A DNA stretch of 63,714 nt, filler included, from Perkinsus chesapeaki ATCC PRA-425 (Eukaryota > Protista > Perkinsozoa): NCBI GenBank assembly GCA_013115145.1. It is 6 parts of 6 records of this genome, joined end to end, with 100 filler letters (N's around TTAATTAATTAA, not from the genome) between each part and the next. Parts side by side here need not be neighbours in the genome. Positions count along the whole stretch, not along the records: positions 57,673 to 59,456 come from JAAPAO010001786.1; 5 more parts are not named here. One strand, given 5' to 3'. Both the position numbers and the translations under genes were made by a program. The notes under the pieces were generated by a model. It was not told the origin of the DNA and did no database searches. It worked only from the letters and a program-made list of their open reading frames with translations. Position 1 is the stretch's first letter. Each line of letters opens with the position of its first letter. Shown here piece after piece: positions 1 through 59,456 of this stretch.

Positions 1-333
1 AGCGACACCGTGAGAAACATGGTCAACATCCGGAACCGCCGACTCGATGCCATTTTCGGTAACGCCGACGGCAACAAGCCCATCATCGACCCAGTTCCCC
101 AGTGCAACCAAAATCGGCGGTCTATGAACATCCGGGTTGGCGACCCTGTACTTAAATGGACCCCTGCCACTGGTCAAGGTCCTCTTGGCACTCACTGGTC
201 TGGCCCCTTCACCGTCACCCACAAGACTGGTCGTCAAACGGTAATCCTAAGCGATGGTTCTCTACAAGATTGCAGAAATGTTCGACGATGGTATGGCAAG
301 CTACCTTCAGGCTCCAATACTCCTTCTCCTTAA
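1..333 (+). mobile_element. 3' end of Ty3/Gypsy LTR-retrotransposon pol (integrase C-terminus)
   Basis: ORF 10-333 contains the integrase C-terminal GPY/F-type motif HWSGPFTV and is followed immediately by a polypurine tract and an LTR-like segment. Confidence 0.8.
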
Positions 334-57672: not shown

Positions 57673-57720
57673 ATGGCAAATCTTTCCATGCGCAGGTTCG
57701 AATCCCGGGTGCAGATTTTC
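57673..57720 (+). pseudogene. tRNA-like 3' half cut by the gap (Ser-like T-arm)
   Basis: GCGCAGGTTCGAATCCCGGGTGCAGATTTT; T-stem mismatched, 5' half not visible. Confidence 0.45.
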
Positions 57721-57849
57721 ACGTTTACCTTTTTTTGAGTTGACGAACCGCTGTTCTATCCTACCGTGTAGATGTATATATTAGGACTGTGTAGGAGAAA
57801 AAATACCTCAAAACTCTCATTCTTGAAGAAGTTACGGCTGCCCATCGAT

Positions 57850-58960
57850 TCCCCCCCTCTAGAGGACCGGTACTGTAGCCCTTCCAGAGCGGCTCTGGCA
57901 GAGCCTACCGGGTTCAGGGCATAGACCGCAGGAGACGTGTTAGGCCCTAGTAGCTAGGGTGGTATGGCTGATGATCAGCCGCTGATCTAAACTTGGCGCC
58001 GGAGGACACGGCCAGCCTTCGGAACACTGCTCCGAGTGATCCTGGATCACTGATCCCAGTCACTTCGCTTCGCGGCTGCTTTCGCCTTTTGGTGTGGCAC
58101 ATGAGTAGAGTACCTGATTCGAGGGACTTCTACCGTTTTGGCTCGTTGAACGAGCCTCGTTCGGAGGGAGGAAGTGGAATCCCAATTGCAATATATCCAA
58201 GGGAGAAATCTGACTCAGATTTGTTGAGGTGTGCGCGTACATTGATAATCTCATGGTAAAGGTCGGCATATTTAAAACACGGTTAAGCCTACCGTAGGCT
58301 GCCTACGGTCTATCGCTGTTGTGATTAAGGTTAAGTAAGGTCTAAGTGCGCGAGATGATATGTGGTAGCTCTTAACTGTAGATCGATTGCCCGATCTATT
58401 TTCCCGCCTTAGTGAGATATCTATGGTCGTACGTGTTTCCGCGGGCGCTTACTATCATTGTTTATCACTGTACTACTGTAGGGGTTCTTGTTATTGCTCT
58501 GTTGTTAACTCATCGACCGTGTTATGAGCACCCCAAGGTCTAGTGACCACAGTCCTTCTATATCGGCTGATCCCGAGCGTTCTGTGTTATTGAGTGAGAG
58601 GGACGATAATCATCACGCCATTGACGGCAGTTTACATCAATCGCCATCGTCACAGTGAGGACGTTGTTGAGTATCGGATGCCGGGTAGGGGAAATGCCTT
58701 TGGCAAACAGAAAGACAGTTTGGTAGAAAGCTTGACTATTTTATTCCCTTGTGGATAGTAGTGCCGTGGCTTGGGAATTCGACTTGCGTCCAGTATCTCT
58801 GTCAAACTGCCACTTTCGTGTAGGCAGCCTACACTGTAGGCCCTACAGTAGGCTATCTCGCGTGAATTTCCAGTCCTGCTCATCGGATAGCTTAGTGTAC
58901 CGACTGATGTGTCCTGTGTCCGTGAACCTCTATTATGCCAGAGACTCTCTGGCAGAGAGT
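57850..58960. repeat. Cluster of overlapping short fold-back palindromes
   Basis: At least seven X-x'-X chains read directly (see findings). Confidence 0.9.
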
Positions 58961-59095
58961 TCGGCCGTTATGTGGGGCGCAGCAAATTCTACGCCGCCGC
59001 GCGGTGCGCTTGCGTGCTACCTGCGCATGCGTGCCTCTTCGTGTTTTATTGTACTCGCAACATAAGTATCACTTACCCCTTTAATTTTCTTGGCA

Positions 59096-59456
59096 ATGGC
59101 CCCACTGCAAGGCTTCAGCCGTCGGTGGTTTTTATTGGCCGGCTTATGTTTCGTCTGCGGTATTTATATCATTTGGACCACTTGTATCTACTCTTCGGAT
59201 GCTAAGAGTCTGACAGGCGTGCTACTGGCCACCGGCGGCGGTCTCCGTCAACCCACATCTGTGGTAGAAGAGTCACGCCAGGTTTCTCGCTTGGATGAGT
59301 ACATTATCGCGTACGAGAATAGCAGTACTTGCAGGGATCGGATTGGCCTAGATCGGATCCTCAAGTACCGGGATAGCTTTCGCCAGCATACTCAGGCATT
59401 CTGCCGTGGCGGCTCGAGCTCAGTTCAGTGTGATGCAACTGTTGATCTGAGGAGTG
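59096..59456 (+). CDS. Type II membrane/secreted hypothetical protein, possibly a glycosyltransferase stem; truncated by gap
   Basis: Short cytosolic N-terminus, hydrophobic WFLLAGLCFVCGIYIIW, then a Cys-containing luminal region. Confidence 0.5.

Follow-up and report, generated by a model that had tools for sequence, protein, structure and literature searches.

The window is a stretch of 63,714 nucleotides joined from six records of the Perkinsus chesapeaki ATCC PRA-425 assembly, and the piece analysed here (57673-59456) derives from one of them, JAAPAO010001786.1. Examination of this piece reveals three units on the plus strand, namely a tRNA-like 3' part continued by a multi-copy segment, a multi-copy unit with a short spliced-leader polyadenylated transcript, and the start of a glycosyltransferase-61 (GT61) family gene (Table 1). 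Between them lies unique spacer to which chains of overlapping palindromes are confined, with none in 57673-57877, in 58317-58654 or in the coding region.

Table 1. Features of the piece, in window coordinates. T is the 8-mer from which a chain can be written; fit is the number of positions agreeing with the rule given in the text.
Feature	Position	Strand	T	Fit and remarks
tRNA-like 3' part (GGTTCGAATCCCGG, acceptor-like stretch, T-run), then multi-copy segment	57673-57877	+		no chains
Chain c1	57884-57905		CCAGAGCC	22/22; two odd palindromes, arms 7 and 7, centres 7 nt apart
Decayed odd palindrome	57945-57959			CCCTAG-tag-CTAGGG; arms 6, one mismatch beside the centre; chain score 11/14
Chain c2	57966-57987		GGCTGATC	22/22
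Chain c3	58036-58057		GTGATCCC	21/22; inserted 14 nt = 58037-58050
Chain c4	58141-58162		GCTCGTTC	22/22
Single odd palindrome	58206-58222			AAATCTGA-c-TCAGATTT; chain score 11/14
Chain c6	58286-58307		AGCCTACG	22/22; arms 7 and 9
Multi-copy unit with short spliced-leader polyadenylated transcript	58317-58654	+		exon 58482-58654; no chains
Chain c7 (two nested events)	58819-58854		outer TGTAGGCT; inner (c7b) GCCTACAG	inner event at 58827-58848, 22/22
Chain c8	58938-58959		CCAGAGAG	22/22; inserted 14 nt = 58945-58958
GT61 family gene start, cut by the piece's edge	59096-59455	+		no chains

The leftmost unit stands at 3 to 10 times the baseline depth; its multi-copy segment, at 6 to 10 times, has a sharp end at 57877, with other contigs diverging at 57878, and the whole of 57673-57877 may be a tRNA-linked repeat. 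ARAGORN and Rfam scans of the piece returned no match, which we attribute to a tRNA gene that is either cut by the piece's edge or degenerate. Hundreds of tRNA genes, targets of Dada transposons, are reported from Perkinsus (PMC3706591). The central unit, at 2 to 9 times baseline depth, is represented by an RNA contig from a marine metatranscriptome (X6) that corresponds to 58480-58654, with CCGTAGCCATTTTGGCTCA in front of it and poly(A) after 58654. We take CCGTAGCCATTTTGGCTCA on this contig to be a dinoflagellate-type spliced leader, and an AG acceptor for it lies at 58480-58481. The 44-aa open reading frame of this unit (58524-58658) had no record in the protein collection searched. Abutting chain c4, the stretch TCTACCGTTTTGGCTCG at 58129-58145 resembles the spliced leader ACCGTAGCCATTTTGGCTCAAG minus 5 nt and, judged from its sequence, may be what is left of the leader of a retroposed mRNA. 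An origin of the palindrome arms from the spliced leader was considered and rejected, this one stretch being a plausible relic and the similarity of the other arms being at chance level.

The GT61 gene is a member of a paralogue family in the window genome. Its product shares 67% identity with P. chesapeaki KAF4671908 and 38% with a P. olseni GT61 protein, and the DNA of 59300-59456 is 93.6% identical to another P. chesapeaki locus (L001). Amoebophrya, which the dinoflagellate-type leader on X6 had suggested as the source, was rejected on the strength of these Perkinsus matches. Searches with the GT61 fragment gave matches only in P. chesapeaki and in an MMETSP transcript, the latter 69 to 71% identical; with the P. 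olseni GT61 protein as query no orthologue was retrieved, and the syntenic locus of P. marinus contains neither the piece nor GT61. Over 59353-59456 the depth rises 2 to 5 times, with other contigs diverging at 59384 and 59446. Upstream of the gene, at 58970-58988, lies a motif GGGGCGCAG(A/C)AAATT that several divergent copies have conserved in front of related genes; it may be a regulatory or promoter-proximal element that they have in common.

The overlapping palindrome chains of the spacer are real and highly non-random. Across 57673-59456, perfect palindromes with arms of 6 nt or more around a 1-nt centre number 16, against 0.42 ± 0.68 (maximum 3) in 300 dinucleotide-preserving shuffles, and with arms of at least 7 nt the count is 15 against 0.12 expected from the shuffles. 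Spacers of 0, 2 or 4 nt with arms of at least 6 nt gave zero palindromes in the piece, and palindromes with loops of 2 to 6 nt numbered five (in two of these the arms reach 6 nt or more), which is at or below chance. Eight pairs of neighbouring palindromes overlap, as did none in any shuffle, with a centre-to-centre spacing of 7 and one case of 8. Direct 6-mer repeats at a distance of 14 nt were found eight times (0.3 expected), and all other distances were at chance level. An earlier note on this DNA had quoted seven chains and taken enrichment of their X-n-x'-n-X geometry over dinucleotide-shuffled DNA as a test of its reading; a scan of the piece recovered each of the seven in its place, and the excess over shuffles within 57673-59456 was strong. 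Its list had overlooked the single palindrome at 58206-58222 and the decayed one at 57945-57959. Its description of the arms as mostly unrelated holds in general, except that CCAGAG is common to c1 and c8 and AGCCTAC to c6 and c7, and what it called a four-fold GTAGGC/GCCTAC chain is indeed present but resolves into the two nested 14-nt events of c7.

A single rule describes these chains, in which an 8-mer T is expanded to T[1..7]+rc(T)+T[2..8], a product of 22 nt with a net gain of 14 nt. Seven chains follow it at 22 of 22 positions and one at 21 of 22, giving eight formula-fitting events in the piece, or nine if both nested c7 events are counted. The single deviation of a centre base concerns c3, whose first centre (58043) is T where the rule predicts G, and in c6 the second palindrome runs 2 nt beyond T, up to 58309. 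When the inner 14 nt are removed from c7, a perfect 22-mer for TGTAGGCT is left, and deletion of its 14 nt in turn leaves plain ...ctttcGTGTAGGCTATCTCG. The apparent spacings of 8 and 6 nt in c7 are by-products of these two nested events; a 9-bp unit for its first pair, considered at one point, was dropped since the nesting accounts for the spacing. The single palindrome at 58206-58222 is read as a variant scar whose third arm is just 4/7 intact. Between c1 and c8 the two T sequences differ at two bases, which translates into five symmetric differences across the chains, and each chain was therefore made from its own T. Some targets recur, AGCCTAC three times and CCAGAG twice. Taken together with the relatives described below, the unit T is 8 bp in all 13 events (eight in the piece, four in P. 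olseni, one in P. marinus).

Unitigs assembled from runs of two studies (X1, 2020; X2 and X3, 2022) cover 57716-58346 and 58581-59413 with 0 differences, the independence of the two studies being limited in that either sample may be the window's own source. The chains are not an assembly artefact of a single data set. Divergent copies within the same genome reveal what the sites look like without the insert. At c8, divergent contigs of X1 and X3 match the piece to 58944 and resume gap-free at 58959, being 14 nt shorter; these empty copies are without 58945-58958 and hold one CCAGAGA(T) only, and a further divergent copy is 16 nt shorter at the same site. At c3, a divergent contig joins 58036 straight to 58051, that is, the chain minus exactly 14 nt. 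Where the empty site of c8 is known, the centres of the chain are the complements of t8 and t1. No microhomology or quasi-palindrome that could serve for priming was found in the empty sites CCAGAGAT and GTGATCCC, or in ACGACGAG of P. olseni.

The same events were found in other Perkinsus species, and the 22-nt rule is common to P. olseni, P. marinus and the window genome. For P. olseni, the syntenic locus was aligned from three isolates (L002; L003, identical to L004; and L005) at 92 to 94.5% identity. At L005 4647-4668 the sequence reads ACGATGA CTCATCGT CGATGAG, and both L002 and L003 have the bare ACGACGAG, a clean 14-nt indel whose centres are the complements of the last and first base (t8, t1) of the empty site. 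The insertion polymorphism carrying inverted copies of the flank that the earlier note had anticipated between strains is found in this comparison of L005 with L002 and L003, in addition to the c3 and c8 copies. At L002 5060, a 61-nt insertion built on T=GTGGACAC reads T[1..7]+rc(T), then about 39 nt of filler, then rc(T)+T[2..8]; this filled, "unannealed" form is private to L002 and missing from two haplotypes. It sits in an apparent intron. Fixed chains were found in P. olseni at L003 8541 (T=CCGGAGCT) and L005 19060 (T=GAAACAGA), and P. marinus ATCC 50983 carries one at L006 19769 (T=GTTGACAC), so that the relatives contribute five events, four intact and one filled.

Chains decay neutrally between P. 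olseni haplotypes, through single uncompensated substitutions such as those separating L003 from L005 at 19060. Compared with these decayed chains, those of the piece are in a near-perfect state and are therefore young. They are also clustered, with eight events (nine with both c7) per 1.8-kb piece against about 1 per 20 kb in the P. olseni and P. marinus loci, and the nine fall within about 1.1 kb of spacer. In 25 kb of other P. chesapeaki loci (L001, L007) we found 0 perfect chains.

These loci contained further structures that deserve mention in their own right. Palindromes with the GTAGG/CCTAC core of c6 and c7 occur in P. chesapeaki at L007 204-218 (AGTAGGC-a-GCCTACT) and L001 5239 (GTAGGA-c-TCCTAC), and this core may be either a motif that recurs or a target that is preferred. 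At L001 5183-5233, between exons of a START-domain gene and where the sequence is not conserved, lies an odd palindrome of 51 nt that is perfect but for one mismatch in its 25-nt arms. Read on the gene strand it begins with GT and ends with AG, and it may be a very small intron folding as a hairpin or else a long scar of the one-sided kind. In P. olseni, a 1176-nt insertion at L003 6976-8151, missing from the two other haplotypes, is foldback-like: it has a GGCA duplication of about 4 bp and inverted arrays of 20-mer repeats (CAAAATCCAAGGCACCTGAC) in subterminal position. Its appearance is that of a non-autonomous DNA transposon that is still active. A second insertion, of about 690 nt and present in one haplotype (L002 5405-6113), starts with 12 nt that repeat its left flank in inverted orientation (CAACCAGACCAG-aaa-CTGGTCTGGTTG) and contains many short hairpins and a tRNA-like T-arm (GGTTCGATTCCC).

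The chains are mutational scars, and neither selected hairpins nor artefacts. That they result from the repair of hairpin-capped breaks at an 8-bp duplication appears very probable to us; that they are, more specifically, excision footprints of a hAT-type cut-and-paste transposon, or of an enzyme cleaving like one, is the explanation we favour and consider reasonably probable. Target site duplications (TSDs) of hAT elements are mostly 8 bp and hairpins form on the flanking DNA (PMC5499845), and hAT excision footprints in yeast have arms of up to 20 nt, with joins that are mostly microhomology-mediated (PMC5873905). In the scheme that we propose, insertion would duplicate the 8-bp target T, and excision would seal each flank into a covalent hairpin whose apex is the complement of the base bordering the element, a feature that would account for the palindromes being odd. 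If the hairpins were opened far from the apex, or resected, two 3' tails reading rc(T) and T would be left; complementary over the full 8 nt, these could anneal, and after trimming of the flaps the ligated product would be T[1..7]+rc(T)+T[2..8], the original site plus 14 nt. Were the original TSD copies to anneal instead, the site would be restored without a visible trace, which may be why the visible scars are uniform. This hairpin-tail-annealing route is our own derivation, and it agrees with the centre bases at the L005 event and at c8. A strand-symmetric product, a fixed 8-bp unit and 1-nt centres arising at sites that held no prior inverted repeat are what two hairpinned TSD copies would be expected to give. 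Repeated short hops of one element could leave a trail of about ten fresh scars in a 1.1-kb spacer, and one hop into an earlier scar could produce the nested c7; the clustering would fit the tendency of hAT elements to reinsert nearby.

Several features known from hAT footprints were recovered. In all 13 events the 8-bp TSD still flanks the scar on either side, the odd palindromes are centred on the complement of the element-adjoining base (with the first centre of c3 as the exception), and compared with unoccupied sites the scar adds sequence, as seen in the c3 and c8 copies and in the P. olseni haplotypes. Hermes biochemistry, reportedly that of Zhou et al. 2004, is said to show that hAT enzymes nick with a 1-nt offset. 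Indirect support for this offset comes from PMC5873905. Other observations fit the hAT reading less well. Typical short hAT footprints, which are 8-bp near-tandem duplications, are not enriched in the piece, and the repair outcome would therefore need unusual uniformity, with host repair favouring long tails and annealing. Of the 13 sites, just 2 (GTGGACAC and GTTGACAC) have the T2 and A7 of the hAT target consensus nTnnnnAn, to which many hATs conform only weakly. Simple hopping also does not predict related targets, such as CCAGAG used twice and AGCCTAC three times. Among the P. olseni indels no hAT-like MITE with terminal inverted repeats and TSD was found. The Perkinsus transposons in the literature found are Dada, Merlin and Tc1-like only, and the literature search gave nothing on such palindromes in Perkinsus. 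As a separate observation, two near-tandem duplications in the piece, ACTGTACT/ACTGTAGG (8 bp, at the leader acceptor, 58467-58482) and TGTGTCC/TGTGTCC (7 bp, 58908-58921), may be another kind of short footprint, their number being at chance level.

The search of roughly 100 kb of Perkinsus DNA turned up neither a hAT transposase nor a hAT-like MITE, and no occupied site, a result that also agrees with a host process acting without any mobile element, through an endogenous hairpin-forming nuclease (e.g., a domesticated transposase) or some other break-repair route with an 8-bp stagger. Such a process would produce a geometry identical to that of the hAT reading; it is consistent with a cluster inside one spacer, and the recurrence of targets could mean a sequence or site preference. 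We nevertheless regard it as unlikely, for a copy of T is needed on both hairpinned ends, which a simple staggered cut without prior insertion does not provide, and single scars are scattered at unrelated sites in other Perkinsus species. Polymerase template switching, by Pol theta snap-back at breaks or by U-turns of a replicative polymerase between strands, is the direction in which the earlier note had argued, and much of what that note described stands. Its view of the chains as the footprint of a process writing inverted flank copies is supported by the rule and by the 14-nt presence/absence, the writing of new non-coding DNA amounts to nine events of 14 nt (about 126 nt in about 1.1 kb), and the process is iterative in that one site was hit repeatedly, c7 being two nested events. 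Inverted flank copies and iteration at c7 would both suit template switching, as would the c6 arm that reaches 2 nt past T and the filler DNA of one P. olseni insertion (L002). The proposed enzyme, a snap-back or Pol theta-like polymerase, is probably wrong: the product is strand-symmetric with a fixed 8-bp unit and 1-nt centres only, and neither the priming microhomology nor the unpaired loop that mark Pol theta snap-back was found. Template switching of either kind is improbable, given empty sites that offer no microhomology or quasi-palindrome from which to prime, no enrichment of the spacers of at least 3 unpaired bases that a primed fold-back leaves, a length of 8 bp in 13 of 13 events, and a rotational symmetry that corresponds to two identical hairpinned ends and would demand two unlike jumps of a one-directional polymerase.

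The earlier note also offered the alternative of selected, switchable hairpins, which in DNA or RNA would have a role in transcription, termination or replication. In its favour are the intergenic position of the chains next to transcription units and a middle arm that can pair left or right. Presence/absence polymorphism, among haplotypes and among copies within the genome, and the decay of older copies by single substitutions contradict it; the arms have no common sequence, Rfam gives no match, and conservation with compensatory changes, as expected of a functional element, was not observed, all of which makes such selection very unlikely. A sequencing or assembly artefact has still less to recommend it and strikes us as extremely improbable: certain library preparations do generate palindromes, and both DNA samples are possible sources of the window, but the unitigs of four runs from two studies are identical at full depth, and the same 22-nt rule appears in three P. 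olseni isolates and in P. marinus ATCC 50983, whose assemblies are independent and were sequenced years apart.

Scars of this kind are already known as transposon excision footprints with P-nucleotides, and what is new is their occurrence in Perkinsus as uniform, full-TSD palindromes that form a clustered trail. Like the chains, the footprints of hAT elements (Ac/Ds, hobo, Hermes, Tam3), with their palindromic P-nucleotides, combine an 8-bp TSD with odd palindromes on the complement of the element-adjoining base, and hAT elements share with the present case microhomology joining after hairpin opening and a preference for nearby reinsertion (PMC5873905; PMC5499845). The P-tract here is the whole TSD in nearly all events, with a uniform 22 nt, whereas hAT elements leave a spectrum of short footprints. 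Covalent flank hairpins opened off-centre to give inverted flank copies are also a feature of V(D)J P-nucleotides (RAG and Artemis) and of Transib and MULE elements. RAG and Transib hairpins are symmetric and should yield even palindromes, and the TSD of Transib is 5 bp. The flank hairpin of Muta1 is exactly doubled (43 bp to 86 nt), and MULE TSDs measure 8 to 10 bp (PMC5499845). Even palindromes are thus expected from the symmetric hairpins of RAG, Transib and Muta1, in contrast to the zero found here. Pol theta end joining with snap-back likewise produces inverted, flank-copied insertions and can iterate, yet it needs priming microhomology and a loop and gives variable lengths, unlike the fixed 8 bp and 1-nt centres of the chains. 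Quasi-palindrome correction by replication template switching in bacteria and yeast also makes perfect short palindromes by templated synthesis, but it starts from an imperfect palindrome and adds no 14-nt unit, and the empty sites here are non-palindromic.

A further parallel lies in the introners of Amoebophrya, which have inverted repeats of 8 to 20 nt without family-specific sequence, together with short direct repeats (PMC7789003, Farhat et al. 2021). They too belong to the Myzozoa, and the filled 61-nt event of P. olseni has a similar inverted-repeat and direct-repeat look; by their published description, however, introners are spliced introns of 40 to 1000 nt within genes, unlike the filler-free chains in the spacer of the piece. 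It is conceivable, if quite doubtful, that the scars stem from a lineage-specific hairpin-forming break-and-repair activity of Myzozoa and not from passing transposons, an activity that would leave 14-nt palindromic units when filler-free and insertions bounded by target-derived inverted and direct repeats when filler is captured, and that would be the origin of the Amoebophrya introners. If this were true, it would supply a mechanism for those introners and for their inverted repeats lacking family-specific sequence, and if the filled variant were common, it would give a lead on the origin of inverted-repeat-bounded introners in related parasites.

Under the hAT reading that we favour, the rule T to T[1..7]+rc(T)+T[2..8] can be counted genome-wide and would trace past cut-and-paste activity even after loss of the element. 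The uniform product suggests that hairpin-capped breaks are repaired by long tails and annealing and not by apex nicking and classical end joining, and this reading of the repair route bears on genome editing in P. marinus; Perkinsus species are parasites of commercial oysters and clams. About one tenth of the spacer was written by the process, which makes it a visible source of new non-coding DNA and of cruciform-prone sites.
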